Sequence record: PP885733.1
Length of the DNA: 64,000 nt
Direction: 5' to 3' (one strand)
Shown: positions 920 to 37,950 of the stretch, piece after piece
How the letters are laid out: every line of letters begins with the position of its first letter
How positions within the stretch are numbered: position 1 is the first letter of the stretch
Translations under genes and position numbers: made by a program
The notes under the pieces: model-generated
The model's database searches: none
Told to the model about the DNA's origin: nothing
Seen by the model: the letters and a program-made list of their open reading frames with translations, nothing else

Positions 920-3118
920 TTATTGTTCGGTCAAGCTGTCTTCGTTGTAGGCTTCCAGCACCGAGTTCATCATGTAAACGCCTTTACCGAACCAGAGGCG
1001 GGTAACAGCATACATGACAGACTTGGAGGTCGGAGAGTCTTCACGGAACGAAGTAACAACTTCCCAGTTGGAGATTACAGAACCGAACAGTTCACGGATA
1101 CGTGCTTCGGCACCATCTTTAACGAATGCCAGATAACCTTCACGGCCAATCTGAGTATCGCCAGAAACCTGGATCCACAGATCCTGCAGGATCTTCTCAA
1201 CGCACACGCACTTCCACACGTTGGTCAGATCTTTCAGCACACTGTTGATGTTGTCATAAACAGTTGGCAGCGCCGGACGGCAGAACTGAGACGTGTTGAT
1301 TGGAGTGACGGTGATAGAACCGTTGGTCAGGTTGTTTGCAGCCGGATCATCAGCTTCGAATTCCACGAGTGGATCGTGCATGATGCGCAGGATGCGGTTA
1401 CCTTCATGGTCAGGCATCAGAGATGCGTACATCTTACCGTCTTCACCACCACCTGCAACTGCGAAGGCGTACATGGTATCCAGGTTCAGAGAGAACCGGT
1501 TCCAGGTCACTTCGTCAATTACACGGGCGTTCCAAAGGTTGATGGAAGAACGACACGCATGAGACTTGTAGGTCTCAGATTCAGGAATCATGCTGATACG
1601 AGTATTCAGCATAGTCGCCGTAGAGTACAGCTCTTCCTGGGTTTTGGTGCGCAGGTATTCAGTTGCACACGGAACAACGATGATGTCTTTACGCTTATTC
1701 AGCATCTGGATCATGGCCAGTTTAACATCAATGTTGAACCCGACGTCCCACATGAAAGAGGTACGGTTACGGATGACGTCTTTCACGTCCAGCGAGTTCT
1801 GGTATTCCAGCAACCACGCCAGGTACAGCATCTGGTTCATTTCCCAGCACTGTTTGTGAGATACGATTGCATCCGGGTCAGATACGTCAGTAATCCATTC
1901 GCCATCCAGATCATCGATCCAGTTGGAAGGTTTAGCTGGGTACTGGCCGTCTTTATCAGCGAACGGGTTGATACCGCCGTTAGCCTGCTGATAGTGGTTC
2001 AGGCTCACACGGGAACCTTCCAGCTTGTCAGCAACTTTCAGTGCGCCACCGAACACGATGCGGTGATATGGTTTACCGTAATGGTCGACCAGATCCAGCG
2101 GGTTCATGATAGCGTACTTAGGCATACGGTTGCTCAGTACAGTCGGAGGAGTCTGACCACCATCGACATACTCTGCTTTGTAAAGTTCATTACAAACGGT
2201 ATTGATGTTGTTCTGATAAATGAAGGTGTTGTTGAACGGCGCTTCACGATCAGAGGTCGGACGGTTGACGTTTTTACCGGTATAGGTATCAACGGCAGTT
2301 TTCAGGCTGTAGCGAACTTTCAGGTCGGAGACCATGTCGAACAGAGTAAAGGTGGTGTCCGGAGAACCACTTACGCTGCTGAATGGAACACGCAGGCCGT
2401 TTGGCAACAGGGTACCGATGTTCAGTACGAACGGGTACGCGCCGTTGGTGATAACAAAGCGAGCGATTTCAGACCAGTCGGTGCTGTAGCTGTGACCCAT
2501 CGCAGCATAGCTTGCGTTGTAGGCATCACCGATACCAGCTTCCAGTTCATAGAACGGATAGAACTTGCCTTTGGTCCCGACAGGGATGTCAGGAGTAGAC
2601 GCATCAGCCGTTACTTCGAATACTGCAGCTTTGCCAACTTCCAGATCTTTCACGAACTGAGTGGCTGGACAGATCCACTTACCTTCAACGGTAGGAGTGG
2701 CGTCGTCCGGAACTGGGTTGCCAGCATCGTCAACAGCATAATCGCCCGAAGGCAGACGTTTGTAGTTTGGTACATCACCAGAGAACACAGCAACGCCGCC
2801 CAGAACACGCGCTTGCACGGTGTTGTTGGTCAGACGTTTGAAACTGAAGCTAGCCTGTGCGGCATCGCCGAGTTTCATGATCGCCAGAGAAACCGGGTTG
2901 TAATACATCCCGAACGCATCAGTAGTGTCACCGAATTTCTCAGTGAAGCCACCTACCGACGTGGTCGCGCGACGGGTAGGCCCTTTTGGGGTAACCATCG
3001 CGAAGTCCGGAAAGTGAGCAGGAGAAGAGATAATGGGAGTTGTGCTCGCGAATTCTTCGCGGGACACGATACCCTCATTAACTACTTTCCCTGGAATCAC
3101 TTTGTTAAAAGTTTCCAT
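920..3118 (-). CDS. Contractile tail sheath protein (phiKZ gp29-like)
   Basis: ~732 aa from METFNKV (GAGG SD upstream; ORF track extends to 3157); sheath-like C-terminus (WDVGF..., LWFGKGVY); next to tube gene. Confidence 0.8.
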   Translation of the reverse strand: METFNKVIPGKVVNEGIVSREEFASTTPIISSPAHFPDFAMVTPKGPTRRATTSVGGFTEKFGDTTDAFGMYYNPVSLAIMKLGDAAQASFSFKRLTNNTVQARVLGGVAVFSGDVPNYKRLPSGDYAVDDAGNPVPDDATPTVEGKWICPATQFVKDLEVGKAAVFEVTADASTPDIPVGTKGKFYPFYELEAGIGDAYNASYAAMGHSYSTDWSEIARFVITNGAYPFVLNIGTLLPNGLRVPFSSVSGSPDTTFTLFDMVSDLKVRYSLKTAVDTYTGKNVNRPTSDREAPFNNTFIYQNNINTVCNELYKAEYVDGGQTPPTVLSNRMPKYAIMNPLDLVDHYGKPYHRIVFGGALKVADKLEGSRVSLNHYQQANGGINPFADKDGQYPAKPSNWIDDLDGEWITDVSDPDAIVSHKQCWEMNQMLYLAWLLEYQNSLDVKDVIRNRTSFMWDVGFNIDVKLAMIQMLNKRKDIIVVPCATEYLRTKTQEELYSTATMLNTRISMIPESETYKSHACRSSINLWNARVIDEVTWNRFSLNLDTMYAFAVAGGGEDGKMYASLMPDHEGNRILRIMHDPLVEFEADDPAANNLTNGSITVTPINTSQFCRPALPTVYDNINSVLKDLTNVWKCVCVEKILQDLWIQVSGDTQIGREGYLAFVKDGAEARIRELFGSVISNWEVVTSFREDSPTSKSVMYAVTRLWFGKGVYMMNSVLEAYNEDSLTEQ

Positions 3119-8662: not shown

Positions 8663-8704
8663 CATAACCCCTACCCCTCCTCACGGAGTGGGTAGGGGAA
8701 TATG
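8663..8704. terminator. Bidirectional intrinsic terminator; identical to 11639-11680
   Basis: CCCCTACCC-ctcc-TCAC-ggag-tGGGTAGGGG hairpin between convergent genes. Confidence 0.85.
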
Positions 8705-11638: not shown

Positions 11639-11680
11639 CATAACCCCTACCCCTCCTCACGGAGTGGGTAGGGGAATATG
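11639..11680. terminator. Bidirectional intrinsic terminator; identical to 8663-8704
   Basis: 42-bp exact copy between convergent genes. Confidence 0.85.
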
Positions 11681-12288: not shown

Positions 12289-13760
12289 TATGTCATCGCA
12301 TCCATCGTTAAAGTTCGCAGGACGATGTAAAGCATCAACGAGGTACGCAGAGACGTGATCTTAATGTCAGTCTTGATACCAGTCATTGCTTTAACTAATT
12401 CGTCACCATTGTTTCTGAGCTTCAGCAATAGAGCGTTTGACGATTTACTTGAGGTGTATGCACCACGGATCTTAAAGAAGATATTCTTTATATCGTTGTG
12501 GCGAATGCTGTTGGAGTTGAGATACTCAAACAAGTGAGCGATCACATCATCAACAAACAGTCGGTACTGTTCACCTTTAGGGTGAGCGTACTGCATTGGG
12601 AAATCCCGAAGGATCATCTCAAGCTTATCAGCATCCGTTCTTGGTATTGCTTTAGCGGCATAGATTGCAAGTTCCTGTTTATAAAAACTGTTCTTGTCGT
12701 TCAATACACCACTAATATAGTTACGATAACGAGTCTCTCGTTTCTGAACATCTTTGATATTCAGTTCACCATCCAGGATGGCTAAACCAGAGTCGGTTTC
12801 CACCAGGTCGACGGAATCCTTAATCTCATACAGAACTTTGGTATAGTCGTTGATTACACCTTTGAGACGGGATTCCATATCGTTCACCATGTAAACGATT
12901 TTCTTATCGTTATCCATCTTCGTAAAGGCATCAAAGTGAATACCAGTACGAGGGTCGATAATGAACTCTGCACGAGCACGGAACAGCTCGTTCCATGAAC
13001 CATAACGCTTGATATCAAACTTCAACGAAAGCTTGTTGTAGGCGGTTACAGCGACACTGTGCTTAACAAGGTAGCCGTAATAGTGGTTCATGATAGAAGT
13101 CATGATACGATAGTGGAAAAGCATGATGATGTTAACCATCGCATCTTCTTTCAGGTTACGTGGTAGGTCTGAATTCCATACCCGGTGTAACAAATAGATG
13201 CAGGACAAGTTAAAGACTTCAGATGAAACTTTAAAGTCTTTGTTGATCCATTTGGTCTTGATCAGTTCATCTCGTAAACGCACTTCATCAACATCGATAA
13301 TGTCACGGAAGAAAGTAACACGATCAGAAGTTTTAAACAGAACACGATGCGTTCCCAGATATGGCGAGCCGAAGAACTCAGTGTGATCGTTGTCTTTCGT
13401 TGCGAAGCCATAGACGTAGCGCTTAAGGGTTTTAACCCAACGTTCGTTAATGACGAGATCATCCACATACGCGTCGAAGATGTCTTTAACAGCATCATCA
13501 CGGTTGTAGTTGAAGTTAGGTTGGAGTGCTTCCATACCGGCGACGAACTCTGGGGTTAACAGAGATTCCATACCGCCGAACTGGTTGAACGCAGGTATTG
13601 GACCAAACATTGTGACTGGAGCATCAGGGTTAGCAGCTTCTAACCCAGCCAACATCTCAGTCAGTTCGGGATCTTGCATTGAACGTTCATACAGTTCTTC
13701 TGGAGACAGTTCCACAAAGCGGTACTTAATAATACCGCTATATAAAGAACGTTTGTCCAT
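12288..13760 (-). CDS. Conserved phiKZ-like protein, probably virion-associated
   Basis: 490 aa, translationally coupled to its neighbours. Confidence 0.55.
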   Translation of the reverse strand: MDKRSLYSGIIKYRFVELSPEELYERSMQDPELTEMLAGLEAANPDAPVTMFGPIPAFNQFGGMESLLTPEFVAGMEALQPNFNYNRDDAVKDIFDAYVDDLVINERWVKTLKRYVYGFATKDNDHTEFFGSPYLGTHRVLFKTSDRVTFFRDIIDVDEVRLRDELIKTKWINKDFKVSSEVFNLSCIYLLHRVWNSDLPRNLKEDAMVNIIMLFHYRIMTSIMNHYYGYLVKHSVAVTAYNKLSLKFDIKRYGSWNELFRARAEFIIDPRTGIHFDAFTKMDNDKKIVYMVNDMESRLKGVINDYTKVLYEIKDSVDLVETDSGLAILDGELNIKDVQKRETRYRNYISGVLNDKNSFYKQELAIYAAKAIPRTDADKLEMILRDFPMQYAHPKGEQYRLFVDDVIAHLFEYLNSNSIRHNDIKNIFFKIRGAYTSSKSSNALLLKLRNNGDELVKAMTGIKTDIKITSLRTSLMLYIVLRTLTMDAMT

Positions 13761-14605
13761 TAGCGTTTCCTTGGGACGTACATTTTCAGTGAGTCAGCTT
13801 TACCCTTAGGATCAGAGTAAGCGAGATATTTCTTCATCTCATTGTAGTACATGTCTTTAAACTCACGACCTGCATCAGCATAGCCTTGAATCTCATCCTG
13901 GACATCTTCCACAGACACACCGAAACGACTAACAGCTTCCTGCATACCACGACGACAGTTCTTATAGATGTAAGCCTTAGTACCCAGCTCAATCCACTCA
14001 GCGAACTTGTCATGCATCTTCGGATGAAGAGATGTAAAGTGATCATCAAACGAGAGTACCACTTTGGCGATCATATTAAACATGGCAGAACCTGCATCAC
14101 GAATGATGAAGGAGTTATTACCTGTCATGGTAATGTTGGTAAAGGTACGCTGAACGTTACTGTCATCAAGACCGTTGATCAGACGGCTTAATGCATTGTT
14201 CATCTGCCCAGTACCACAGTTGGCATAACCACTAAAGTTATTACCATTCATGATAGCCCGGTTGATATTACCCGGATAGACTTCTAATACCTGCATGATG
14301 CGACGACCACCGGTTAAGAAGTCAGGAACGTTTACGGCAATTACACCACCGGCCAGGTTTTCAATTCGTGCATAACTAAGATCCACCACTTCAGTTGTAC
14401 CACCCGCCACGTTCATTAGCGGTGCACACATCTTCATGATAACCTTTTCACGAATACCCTGATCGACTGTGAATTCACTATTGACTGGTTGCCAAACACT
14501 ACCGTACCCGTTATTAGGATTGTCAAAAGCGAGTTTCAACATATACGGTGAGATGTCAGACGGACCATCAACAATGTAGTTGATAGCAAAATCTACAGCG
14601 CTCAT
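13760..14605 (-). CDS. Conserved phiKZ-like protein, probably virion-associated
   Basis: 281 aa, SD upstream, coupled to the next gene. Confidence 0.55.
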   Translation of the reverse strand: MSAVDFAINYIVDGPSDISPYMLKLAFDNPNNGYGSVWQPVNSEFTVDQGIREKVIMKMCAPLMNVAGGTTEVVDLSYARIENLAGGVIAVNVPDFLTGGRRIMQVLEVYPGNINRAIMNGNNFSGYANCGTGQMNNALSRLINGLDDSNVQRTFTNITMTGNNSFIIRDAGSAMFNMIAKVVLSFDDHFTSLHPKMHDKFAEWIELGTKAYIYKNCRRGMQEAVSRFGVSVEDVQDEIQGYADAGREFKDMYYNEMKKYLAYSDPKGKADSLKMYVPRKR

Positions 14606-14646
14606 ATTTATACCCTTGCAAGGAACTTACAAATGATTTAAACAGA

Positions 14647-14689
14647 CATAAACCCCTACCCCACCTTTCGGAGGAGTAGGGGCAATATG
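14647..14689 (-). terminator. Intrinsic terminator closing the RNA island transcript
   Basis: Minus strand CCCCTACTCC-tcc-GAAA-ggt-GGGGTAGGGG followed by TTTATGTCTGTTT; variant of the 8663/11639 family. Confidence 0.8.
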
Positions 14690-14696
14690 CTTTAAT

Positions 14697-14791
14697 CACC
14701 GACGGTCCCAAAGAGGTCTGGAGTCCTCTATCCCTGGAACCCGTTTCGTCCACTTATTTCACATCGTCGGACTCATCAGGGTGTACGATGC
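14697..14791 (-). ncRNA. Type I hammerhead ribozyme
   Basis: Minus strand: CACC (stem I)-CUGAUGA-GUCC...GGAC (stem II)-GAAA-CGG...CCG (stem III)-UC|GGUG; complete invariant core; 7-bp pseudoknot GCAUCGU/ACGAUGU between the 5' flank and loop II; predicted cut between 14701 and 14700. Confidence 0.92.
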
Positions 14792-15370
14792 TCCCACTAA
14801 GAAGTAGGTCGAGTTACCCGATATCGTGCAAATCTCATTGTGAGATCCATTGGTCACTTTGAACATCGATGTTCAGGACCCAAATGCAACTGTCGTTCGG
14901 GTAACTCAATAGGTGTGCTCAACGCTTAGAGCTGAACGACGAATCACGTCTGTCTCGTTCGCTCTAGGTCAAGCACGAATGGGTACAACGTTCCCAGCTC
15001 TGATAGATATTGTTTTTTATGACCGCCCAGGATGGAGTTCGGGTTCTACCATCATCTATAACCCGGATATACCGGGAGTGCATTCAGCTTATGCTACTGG
15101 ACATTCTATCAGCGCGTTGTGATAGCCGGAATCCCCGGCAACCCACCAGAGGCTACTTACAATAGCGGACTTCTGCCGCCGTTCACTCTCTGGATTTATC
15201 CCTGAGCAGGTGAAAGCTACTCAGAGTTTGCCTTCTCCAGCCAGTCGGGGAGGTGAGACCCCAATACCGGAGAAGGTCTTACAACCAATGTCGACTGGTA
15301 GACTCCTGTTAAGCGGCCCTGGCAGCAGGCGCATTAACCCAAATCTACGCTTCCCGACGTTTCGGTTGTT
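14701..15370 (-). ncRNA. Putative large structured ncRNA (~670 nt) ending in the hammerhead
   Basis: No credible ORF; nested helices 14811-14821/14897-14907 (11 bp perfect), 14915-14922/14969-14976, 15000-15007/15105-15112; pseudoknot 15231-15238/15269-15276 with 15241-15247/15292-15298; G-U pairs favour the minus strand. Confidence 0.65.
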
Positions 15371-15376
15371 ATCCTT

Positions 15377-15871
15377 TTAAACCGCACAGCCATCCTTGCA
15401 GTCGTTGTCAGGAATAATGGCAGCAGCTTCTTTCGTTGCTTCTTCCATACGTTCCTCGTTACGAGCTTGTGCGTCTTCCAGGTCGCCAAAGTGCAGGTTA
15501 TCCGGATCGAAGTTATCGATGGACACTTCTGGCTTGTCGGCCTTGAGTTCTTTGACTTTCGCTTCGAACTCGGTGAAACCGCCGATGTAAACATCATCGA
15601 GCAGAATCTGTGGAACAGTGCGAACTGGACGACCCAGCATTTCACTGAGCTTTTCGCCGTCAATACCTGCAGCGCGAATATCAACGTAAGTGAATTCGAT
15701 CTTTTCGCGTTCACACAGAGCTTTTGCGCTGTCGCAGTATGGGCAGTTCGGGCGTCCGTAAATTACAGCTTTCATTGTTGGTGGTCTCAGCTTGATAGTA
15801 ACTTCTCCACCCGATACAAAAGGCATGGAGTGCGGATAGTTATAAGGTTCTGGTGGTACGTAACCTTCCAT
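15377..15871 (-). CDS. Glutaredoxin with N-terminal extension and acidic Cys-containing tail
   Basis: CPYC active site, TVPQI and IGGF motifs; TAAGGA SD. Confidence 0.9.
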   Translation of the reverse strand: MEGYVPPEPYNYPHSMPFVSGGEVTIKLRPPTMKAVIYGRPNCPYCDSAKALCEREKIEFTYVDIRAAGIDGEKLSEMLGRPVRTVPQILLDDVYIGGFTEFEAKVKELKADKPEVSIDNFDPDNLHFGDLEDAQARNEERMEEATKEAAAIIPDNDCKDGCAV

Positions 15872-15886
15872 TATGAATCCTTAATA

Positions 15887-16250
15887 TGGCTCGGTCTTGA
15901 GAAGGTCTTCCTCAACTACTGTGATGACACCCAGTGGTAGAAACTAATCATCCACCATCATGTCACTACGACGTCTAAGACGCAACCGAGGTAATTTGAT
16001 AGGCAGGCTCCGAGTAACGATCTCGGCTTATCACTTAGTACAGTACAGAGGGAGTTGTCCCTAATAACCGCTAACAAGGTCACCCGAGTGGTTACGGGGG
16101 AGTTTGTACCTAAGCTTGCTCCCATAAGCAGCCGCCGTTGAAATATGGGTACGGGCTATTCGTCTTTACGTTGTGGTGGGAAGTGGATCCCAGGTATGGT
16201 CGCCGAAGCGCCCCTGGCCTGTTGTACCCAACTGCAAATAGCCCGTAGTT
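15887..16250 (-). ncRNA. Putative structured RNA (~360 nt) between tRNA-Ser and glutaredoxin
   Basis: ORF-free; helices 16150-16160/16237-16247, 16146-16151/16225-16230, 15997-16002/16028-16033, 15890-15896/15984-15990; cUUCGg tetraloop on the minus strand at ~16201-16210. Confidence 0.55.
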
Positions 16251-16252
16251 TC

Positions 16253-16341
16253 TGGCAGAGAGTAAGGGATTCGAACCCTTGTGCCCCGAAGGACAACCTC
16301 CTTAGCAGGGAGGCGACTTAAACCAGCTCATCCAACTCTCT
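16253..16341 (-). tRNA. tRNA-Ser(GCT), encoded CCA
   Basis: Cloverleaf, anticodon loop CTGCTAA, long variable arm with UUCG loop, GTTCGAATC T-loop, ends GCCA. Confidence 0.95.
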
Positions 16342-16345
16342 AATC

Positions 16346-16421
16346 TGGCGCTCGTGACAGGGCTCGAACCTGTGACATACGGATTAACAGTCCGCCGTTC
16401 TACCGACTGAACTACACGAGC
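16346..16421 (-). tRNA. tRNA-Asn(GTT), encoded CCA
   Basis: 76-nt cloverleaf, anticodon loop CTGTTAA, GTTCGAGCC T-loop, ends GCCA. Confidence 0.95.
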
Positions 16422-20886: not shown

Positions 20887-21018
20887 TTAAATTAATTTCT
20901 GACTCCTATTCTTATCTATTGTTTAGGGGTAGGGGTTTATCCGGACAGGATGAATTAATATAATTACTGAACGAAGTGAAGTATCCTTATTCCATCTGTT
21001 TACCAAAGGTAAGTTAAA

Positions 21019-37568: not shown

Positions 37569-37950
37569 AGCGGTTATCCAATACGGCACAATGAAACTGA
37601 ACCAGATCGCAGCAGAGCGTAAAGGCAAACCAATTCCAAACTGGTGGAAGGTTGAAGACGTTCAAGGTTTCGGTCTGCGTATCAATGAAGGCGAACTGAA
37701 CCTGATGTTAGCAGTACAGGCATTCCCAGTTCCTGAAGCTGGTCCTGGCAACTTCCTGGTCAAGTTCGTGACCACGTTTATGTCGGCGCCAGTCGGGGCA
37801 CATGGGTATGAGTTCATGCCTATGCCGGTGGGTCCGATGTTGCAACAAGACTTCCCTATGTATGCGGTCGATGAACAAGACCTGCAAGATGGGATCATGC
37901 AGTTGATCGCTGACGAAGCAGAGAACATCCTGTGTCAGATACTGCAATAA
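37558..37950 (+). CDS. Hypothetical protein
   Basis: 130 aa, AGAGGA SD. Confidence 0.7.
   Translation: MATKAVIQYGTMKLNQIAAERKGKPIPNWWKVEDVQGFGLRINEGELNLMLAVQAFPVPEAGPGNFLVKFVTTFMSAPVGAHGYEFMPMPVGPMLQQDFPMYAVDEQDLQDGIMQLIADEAENILCQILQ

Follow-up and report, generated by a model that had tools for sequence, protein, structure and literature searches.

GOLLD and ROOL (RF01998 and RF03087) are phage-encoded RNAs that form multimeric cages (bioRxiv 10.1101/2024.12.08.627333). Hammerhead ribozymes are common between phage genes, and pseudoknots that tie their stem I side to loop II are documented to stabilize the active fold in all hammerhead types (PMC3088659). Here we examined a window of 64,000 nucleotides (nt), which corresponds exactly to bases 1-64000 of Pantoea phage Survivor (PP885733.1, 271,576 bp) and in which a first-pass annotation had proposed a large, structured RNA free of open reading frames (ORFs) next to tRNA genes. 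Comparison of homologous loci shows a minus-strand, multi-domain, pseudoknotted RNA family that ends in a complete predicted hammerhead, with a terminator just beyond it. We refer to the large RNA as module A and, from the sequence comparisons below, regard it as a new RNA family with a built-in predicted ribozyme.

Module A shares with GOLLD and ROOL its large size (about 580-800 nt), non-coding nature, multiple junctions, pseudoknots and position beside phage tRNA genes (PMC5737381). It differs from both in that it matches neither covariance model in sequence or structure, in that it occurs in jumbo phages of Gram-negative hosts (Chimalliviridae), whereas GOLLD and ROOL are found mainly in Firmicutes or rumen phages, and in that a predicted self-cleaving ribozyme forms its 3′ domain. 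To our knowledge, no ribozyme has been described as a 3′ domain of GOLLD or ROOL. On this comparison we consider module A to be akin to the two families in size, complexity and tRNA-adjacent position but a member of neither. The predicted ribozyme itself shares the catalytic core, GUC site, three helices, pseudoknot between the stem I side and loop II and phage intergenic setting of the pseudoknot-stabilized bacterial and phage hammerheads (PMC3088659). It departs from them in serving as a constant terminal domain of a single, specific family of large RNAs, in its long three-part stem III with a sequence-conserved loop (YUCCAR), and in scoring far below the Rfam thresholds. Another phage-encoded structured non-coding RNA, the phi29 pRNA, is ~170 nt long, has no ribozyme and is part of the virion machine. 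Module A adjoins virion and packaging genes, which we take as a lead only, but it has no sequence or structural similarity to pRNA and no evidence ties it to packaging.

A covarying RNA family in Petsuvirus-like jumbo phages

The gene order around the RNA, together with 760-1270 nt free of ORFs at the equivalent place, recurs in eight other cultured phages: Edwardsiella pEt-SU, Serratia Yubaba and Sureiya, Klebsiella N1M2, Kosakonia Kc263, Shewanella SXP01, Erwinia AH04 and Pseudomonas OBP. Petsuvirus, with pEt-SU and OBP among its members, is placed in the Chimalliviridae by the NCBI taxonomy, in agreement with the family setting that the first-pass annotation had suggested. By BLASTN the whole stretch aligns to pEt-SU at 77% identity, and only blocks of it align to the other phages. 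When IMG/VR was searched for the pattern of the hammerhead core, OBP was recovered and uncultured jumbo-phage contigs were added, so that the RNA is found in the eight cultured phages and in four distinct uncultured viral contigs (L013, L019, L020 and L027), and it is homologous along its full length in 12 sequences. Further scans returned little else: a pattern taken from the central domain found, among viral contigs, pEt-SU and one false match (L010, a GAACCC coding repeat), and a hammerhead-plus-GAUAUC pattern found only two loci in metagenomes, one a duplicate of L019 and the other L034, which reached only 13.1 bits with our hammerhead model and was excluded from the alignments. The same pattern gave a single match in 185,579 bacterial and archaeal genomes, a chance occurrence in GC-rich coding DNA of Mycolicibacterium. 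Both the hammerhead and module A are absent from the more distant syntenic phages that we examined (Aeromonas D6 and PS1, EL and RisingSun).

We aligned the 12 distinct sequences from the first helix through the hammerhead with MAFFT, using sequence only (alignment A2). RNAalifold predicted 68 pairs on A2, with compensatory changes in 41 of them. We then built a 129-pair model by starting from the Survivor fold, keeping those helices that survive in the alignment and adding two pseudoknots. In this model 83.2% of the alignment cells are paired, and sliding the 3′ partners by 1-3 columns lowers this to 37-46%; both sides of the pair have changed in 73 pairs compared with 20-39 in the slid versions, and none of 500 shuffles attains any of the observed measures. 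Since the model is partly derived from one of the aligned sequences, the paired percentage is inflated, while the compensatory counts are less affected. Covariation among homologues was one of the tests that the first-pass annotation had named for its RNA, and these 73 pairs support a real structured non-coding RNA. The model contains 147 G-U cells and 59 A-C cells, which indicates that the RNA is read from the minus strand. Against 20 shuffles for each strand, the predicted folding energy is −292.8 kcal/mol for the minus strand (z score −6.05) and −251.6 kcal/mol for the plus strand (z −4.6).

The stretch does not appear to be coding. Its biggest ORFs in Survivor are 69, 61, 56 and 51 aa long, and none is preserved as a single ORF among the homologues; matches at the protein level merely follow the conserved nucleotide core and split into differing frames. 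Hypothetical proteins have been annotated on the RNA in two relatives, N1M2_252 (L006 3003-3515, antisense) and Kc263 QYN80068 (L005 2760-2951, across the hammerhead). Neither is conserved among the relatives, and their frames and strands differ, so from sequence both are probably mis-annotations.

To look for membership in a known family we used Rfam 15 in two modes, one applying the gathering score (the window and 13 homologous loci) and the other admitting E-values up to 5-10 (the region plus six relatives). At the gathering score only tRNAs were reported in the window and the 13 loci. In the E-value mode the only relevant match was a 15.5-bit hit to Hammerhead_3, and nothing was repeated among the relatives. 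In the region, the GOLLD and ROOL models gave no match in either mode, with E allowed to reach 10, and they gave none in the 13 loci, or in the six relatives at E up to 5. ARAGORN identified two tRNAs and no transfer-messenger RNA (tmRNA) in the window, and in the homologous loci it likewise reported tRNAs alone; neither Rfam nor ARAGORN matched tmRNA, RNase P RNA or group I or II introns, as the first-pass annotation had judged by eye. Motifs that resemble RNase P or group I elements to the eye (AGAAGUCCG, AGAACCCG and GAUAGAAUGUCC) lack the required pairings or element order, and the flanking genes are complete, so the RNA is not an intron inside a gene. In the literature on jumbo phages, Chimalliviridae or phiKZ with hammerheads or structured RNA, we found no description of module A.

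Domain architecture of module A

The helices of module A fall into a series of domains along the minus strand (Table 1). Almost all of those drawn in the first-pass annotation lie in the minimum-energy fold and are conserved, including the apical hairpin of the 5′ domain, the domain closed by P8, and the 3′ multi-branch domain with its two inner hairpins. The closing helix of the latter, given as 11 bp, in fact extends to 13 bp in Survivor, and over the 12 sequences it is 88.5% paired with compensatory changes in 7 of the 13 pairs. Two elements held only in part: the long interrupted hairpin is present in Survivor but lies in a region that is variable among relatives, and of a proposed 8-bp plus 7-bp pseudoknot (15231-15298) the 8-bp arm corresponds to the covarying 10-bp stem of P4, whereas the 7-bp arm (CCAGUCG 15291-15297 with CGACUGG 15241-15247), though able to form in Survivor, lacks conservation in both pEt-SU and N1M2 and competes with P2, a helix that covaries.

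In the 5′ domain, P1 covaries through ACAACCGA/UUGGUUGU, UAUAAUCCCU/AGGGAUUGUA, CCCAGU/AUUGGG and GACCCA/UGGGUU, and P2 is 100% paired, with compensatory changes present. P6 and P6a are 94% and 88% paired, each with compensatory changes in 3 pairs, and their region carries the conserved sequences GUGAACGG and UAAGUAGC; a variable hairpin comes next. A long-range pseudoknot that joins the strand just 5′ of the central domain to the loop of P10 is 89% paired and also covaries (ACAAC/GUUGU, GCAGC/GCUGU, GCGAC/GUUGC). The central four-way domain that it spans is the best conserved part of the RNA, with ~80-84% of its nucleotides identical in N1M2, Yubaba and SXP01, and two of its hairpin loops, AAGCUGA (15084-15090) and UAGAACCCGAACU (15036-15048), are conserved in sequence. 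The junction strands GAACGAAAG and GCGAUAUC of the 3′ multi-branch domain are invariant. The RNA is nevertheless modular, as the central domain is missing in L020 and L027 and OBP has a different sequence in its place, while P1 and P2 are missing in the AH04 clade.

A loop sequence GAACCCG could pair with the hammerhead strand CGGGUUC over 6-7 bp in Survivor, AH04 and Kc263 and over only 4-5 bp in N1M2 and SXP01. We considered this pairing as a switch and have left it unexplained; contigs without that loop have the same hammerhead.

Table 1. Positions of the RNA, its structural elements and neighbouring features in the Survivor window, and of module B in relatives
Feature	Position	Strand	Details
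Predicted mature RNA (module A plus hammerhead), ~669 nt	14701-15369	minus	First base of P1 to cleavage site; 12-sequence homology, 129-pair model
5′ domain	15281-15369	minus	P1 15362-15369/15281-15288; P2 15354-15358/15290-15294; P3 15341-15348/15298-15305; apical hairpin 15308-15338
Junction GUAAGACC	15275-15282	minus	Invariant; identical in 12/12 sequences
Hairpin P4	15231-15276	minus	Stem 15267-15276/15231-15240; 95.4% paired; compensatory changes in 7/10 pairs
P5 to P6a	15146-15226	minus	P5 15200-15226; conserved UAAAUCC; P6 15188-15193/15146-15151; inner P6a 15176-15180/15164-15168
Long-range pseudoknot, 5′ strand ACAAC	15116-15120	minus	Partner 14985-14989 in P10 loop
Central four-way domain	15000-15112	minus	Closed by P8 15105-15112/15000-15007; inside, P9 15097-15102/15025-15030 and three hairpins
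Hairpin P10 (GGG AACGUUGUA CCC)	14981-14995	minus	Loop gives pseudoknot 3′ strand 14985-14989
Long interrupted hairpin	14915-14976	minus	In Survivor minimum-energy fold; length and sequence differ among relatives
3′ multi-branch domain	14809-14909	minus	Closed by 13-bp helix 14897-14909/14809-14821; inner hairpins 14831-14847, 14852-14880
Short hairpin P13	14793-14808	minus	Just ahead of hammerhead; moderate support
Predicted type I hammerhead ribozyme	14697-14790	minus	Invariant core; covarying stem I and pseudoknot
Hammerhead pseudoknot	14786-14790/14762-14766	minus	
Hammerhead stem I	14780-14783/14697-14700	minus	
Hammerhead core CUGAUGA	14773-14779	minus	
Hammerhead stem II	14769-14772/14748-14751	minus	
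Hammerhead GAA	14745-14747	minus	
Hammerhead stem III	14741-14744/14702-14705	minus	Conserved apical loop 14717-14724
Predicted self-cleavage site	14700-14701	minus	After C14701 of GUC; from position within hammerhead
Terminator	14640-14682	minus	Hairpin 14653-14682, then UUUAUGUCUGUUU with TATG at 14647-14650
Terminator motif copies at gene ends	8690-8704	plus	
	11666-11680	plus	
	14647-14661	minus	
	20927-20941	plus	
tRNA-Asn	16346-16421	minus	
tRNA-Ser	16253-16341	minus	
Glutaredoxin gene	15377-15871	minus	
ORF-free stretch	14606-15376	minus	In minus-strand block
Two virion-protein genes	from 14605 downward	minus	13760-14605 and beyond
Module B consensus			GCCYUAACYGUGAG ... CAAACGGUCCGC-hairpin-GAAGUUGUUGACAUCAA ... 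GUAGACAGCC
Module B sites in relatives	L002 about 2400-2720; L041 about 1990-2375; L042 about 2600-2945		Also in L005, L006, L007, L025, L013, L019, L020, L027

The predicted 3′ hammerhead and the sequences around it

The 3′ end of the RNA is, as predicted from sequence, a type I hammerhead that would cleave after C14701, exactly where the first-pass annotation had placed a ribozyme-defined end. Its minus-strand sequence reads ...GCAUCGUACACC CUGAUGA GUCC-loop-GGAC GAA ACGG...CCGU C / GGUG..., where the slash marks the predicted cut, and the assignment to type I follows from the arrangement of the stems, with II and III capped and I open. The catalytic core CUGA(U/C/A)GA (C3-U4-G5-A6-N7-G8-A9), the GAA (G12-A13-A14) and the GUC site are present in 12/12 sequences, and the N-U-H triplet expected beside the A15.1-U16.1 pair is GUC. 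Stem I has 3-4 bp and takes six differing complementary forms, with compensatory changes in 4/4 pairs, and stem II alternates between GUCC/GGAC and GUCU/AGAC. ACGG/CCGU is invariant, and the outer part of stem III never varies and is thus uninformative for covariation. In every sequence the segment immediately upstream of stem I can pair with loop II over 4-7 bp in a pseudoknot that covaries (CAUCG/CGAUG, CGUCGA/UCGACG, GUUCG/CGAAC, CCCG/CGGG). Taken together, 87.3% of the cells in the hammerhead pairs are paired, compared with 21-51% when the partners are slid. A covariance model built from the 12 sequences gives its own members 82-102 bits and unrelated phage-contig hammerheads 30-36 bits, and its sole significant match in the window is the hammerhead of Survivor; the hammerhead pattern likewise occurs once in 64 kb, against 0.11 occurrences expected. 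No second hammerhead, which at the 5′ end would permit a circular RNA, was found in the window.

Downstream of the predicted cleavage site, by 18 nt in Survivor, lies a GC-rich hairpin of 12 pairs (−29.2 kcal/mol, z −5.2) that is kept in all relatives. Its 3′ arm and TATG-like tail make up a motif, GGGTAGGGG(T/A)(T/A)TAT(G/C), of which the window has 5 copies against 1.0 expected. Four of these mark gene ends; a fifth copy, at 37804-37818, is weak, with 3 mismatches. The motif is also found at several places in related genomes, and since it recurs at other gene ends this hairpin motif is probably the standard terminator of the phage. TATG is itself known as a late promoter and start motif in phiKZ (PMC4666361).

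In most relatives a second conserved structured RNA of ~280-330 nt, module B, separates the hammerhead from the terminator. It accompanies module A in Kc263, N1M2, Yubaba, Sureiya, OBP, AH04, L013, L019, L020 and L027, occurs alone, with neither module A nor a hammerhead, in the Aeromonas phages D6 and PS1, and is absent from pEt-SU, SXP01 and, by BLASTN, the whole Survivor genome; it has no Rfam match. As the hammerhead is kept where the terminator alone follows, and module B occurs without a hammerhead, the hammerhead travels with module A.

The minus-strand block that contains the RNA comprises, in transcription order, three small ORFs, tRNA-Asn, tRNA-Ser, glutaredoxin, the ORF-free stretch, two virion genes and thymidylate kinase; the 281-aa virion protein that flanks the RNA has homologues throughout phiKZ-like phages. 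Some further features of this island can be set beside the RNA. Between tRNA-Ser and glutaredoxin is a second ORF-free stretch (15872-16252, minus strand), whose overall fold is unremarkable (z −1.67) but which includes two blocks, ~15915-15976 (a hairpin) and 16175-16229, with 83-96% identity in N1M2, AH04, SXP01, pEt-SU, L013 and L019; these blocks could represent additional small RNA elements of this island. Glutaredoxin is annotated with an ORF of 164 aa, and its homologues in pEt-SU, Yubaba and N1M2 have 80-90 aa; the true start is probably the internal MKAVIYGRPNCPYC near 15775, in which case the upstream ORF-free stretch would be larger. In SXP01, ~370 extra nt (L003 3412-3790, minus strand) separate glutaredoxin from the RNA, and this insert has GACGAAACGGUA...UACCGUC, resembling half a hammerhead but with CUGAUGC in place of the required CUGAUGA; judged from sequence, it may be a decayed second ribozyme. 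In Aeromonas phage PS1 we observed an unannotated tRNA-Leu (anticodon UAA; L042 2044-2128) between a thioredoxin-domain gene and a virion gene.

Maturation, rival explanations and significance

The interpretation that we favor, and which the comparative evidence renders probable, is that the locus encodes a stable, likely trans-acting, minus-strand non-coding RNA of ~669 nt that is matured by its hammerhead and belongs to an undescribed family of Petsuvirus-like (OBP/pEt-SU group) jumbo phages. Strand and synteny suggest that it would be transcribed as the tail of a tRNA-glutaredoxin unit. The comparison of homologues shows several covarying domains with at least 1 long-range pseudoknot, and in its terminal 90 nt a type I hammerhead motif, which the second pseudoknot would hold in the active shape. 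Hammerhead cleavage after C17 leaves a 2′,3′-cyclic phosphate on the upstream RNA and a 5′-OH on the downstream piece. The predicted cut after C14701 would thus free the large RNA, with a cyclic phosphate end, from the 18-nt spacer and terminator hairpin, or from module B in most relatives. As stem I has so few pairs, the downstream piece should dissociate, taking with it just 3-4 nt of the stem I 3′ strand, and the mature RNA would keep the ribozyme as its 3′ domain. The cyclic phosphate and the loss of the terminator may together give a defined 3′ end that resists exonuclease and polyadenylation. The 5′ end would be set by processing in Survivor, by tRNA-Met 3′ processing in N1M2 and Yubaba, and by a TATG-type start in the AH04 clade. 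We speculate that the mature RNA most likely works in trans during infection, as a folded RNA or an RNA-protein particle, in keeping with GOLLD and ROOL as large ornate RNAs that phages encode next to tRNA genes.

Several observations weigh against this interpretation. The best Rfam match of the hammerhead, to Hammerhead_3, reaches 15.5 bits at E = 10, well short of the gathering score of 48.5, and six relatives show no Rfam hammerhead match at E up to 5, low scores that are probably explained by the long stem III and the pseudoknot. By itself the hammerhead segment is also not unusually stable (z 0.09), so that the evidence for it is comparative, not energetic. The structure as a whole rests on just 12 sequences in about three clades, with significance taken from shuffles and slid partners, and the central domain, lacking in two contigs and replaced in OBP, is not indispensable. 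Finally, the sequence gives no pointer to a specific target or partner, and the RNA begins 8 nt past the glutaredoxin stop codon with an undefined 5′ end in Survivor, so it could remain a 3′ untranslated region (UTR).

This last point leads to an unlikely alternative, in which the RNA is a cis-acting 3′ UTR or processing element that stabilizes or insulates the tRNA-glutaredoxin transcript, the hammerhead cuts the polycistron, and no trans-acting RNA is made. Besides the 8-nt spacing in Survivor, the RNA directly follows the glutaredoxin gene or tRNA-Met in relatives, and gene-flanking prophage hammerheads have been proposed to process long transcripts (PMC3088659). Yet a multi-domain structure of ~670 nt, with pseudoknots and with junctions and loops that are invariant, goes far beyond what mRNA stabilization needs, the RNA of the AH04 clade sits after a different gene with its own upstream TATATTATG, and the hammerhead is retained where the terminator is all that lies downstream. 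Still harder to credit is a selfish RNA element in the tRNA island, active or a remnant, for instance a mobile RNA with a ribozyme or a degenerate intron once capable of self-splicing. Module A with its hammerhead does look as though it had been inserted upstream of module B, the more widespread of the two, and domains are gained and lost among relatives, but even at E up to 5-10 it matches no group I or II intron or other Rfam family, the locus has no split host gene, nor any ORF for a reverse transcriptase or an endonuclease, a single copy occupies a single syntenic site, and its purifying, compensatory evolution indicates function.

The position of the RNA directly upstream of the virion block, with the terminator in between, would also suit a leader or riboswitch-like regulator that acts on the virion genes through the terminator hairpin. 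We regard this as very improbable, since hammerhead cleavage would separate the RNA from both terminator and genes, unrelated genes elsewhere in the window end in the same hairpin motif, and Aeromonas D6 and PS1 have the gene order without module A; moreover, the conserved TATG past the hairpin suggests a separate late start of the virion genes (PMC4666361), which we consider plausible. The least credible reading, to which we give almost no weight, is that there is no RNA gene at all and the region either holds small ORFs that escaped annotation or acts at the DNA level, for example as an origin or packaging site. Hypothetical ORFs are indeed annotated on the region in two relatives and a terminase gene is nearby. 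Those ORFs, however, are unconserved and in differing frames and strands, the substitutions in helices are compensatory, G-U is tolerated on the minus strand far above A-C, and a complete hammerhead core is conserved.

If module A is a hammerhead-matured RNA, as we favor, its biology is of broader interest. Bacterial and phage RNAs this large and complex are rare, and the earlier large classes (rRNA, group II introns, RNase P, OLE, GOLLD, ROOL and raiA) each led to new biochemistry or structural biology. The built-in hammerhead predicts a precise 3′ end, and it would be a rare case of a natural bacterial or phage hammerhead with an identifiable job, the maturation of a specific non-coding RNA. 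Cultured, tractable phage-host pairs are at hand in OBP with Pseudomonas fluorescens, N1M2 with Klebsiella aerogenes, AH04 with Erwinia billingiae and Survivor with Pantoea. The phages that carry module A belong to a family that builds a phage nucleus, where RNA handling between compartments is a live question. In this setting we tentatively raise a more far-reaching possibility, for which we hold distinctly lower confidence: module A could represent a new large functional RNA class of nucleus-forming jumbo phages, a hammerhead-matured RNA-only or RNA-protein higher-order assembly akin to the GOLLD and ROOL cages or a new large ribozyme, that may have a role in the RNA economy of the phage, whether in tRNA handling, export or defence evasion.

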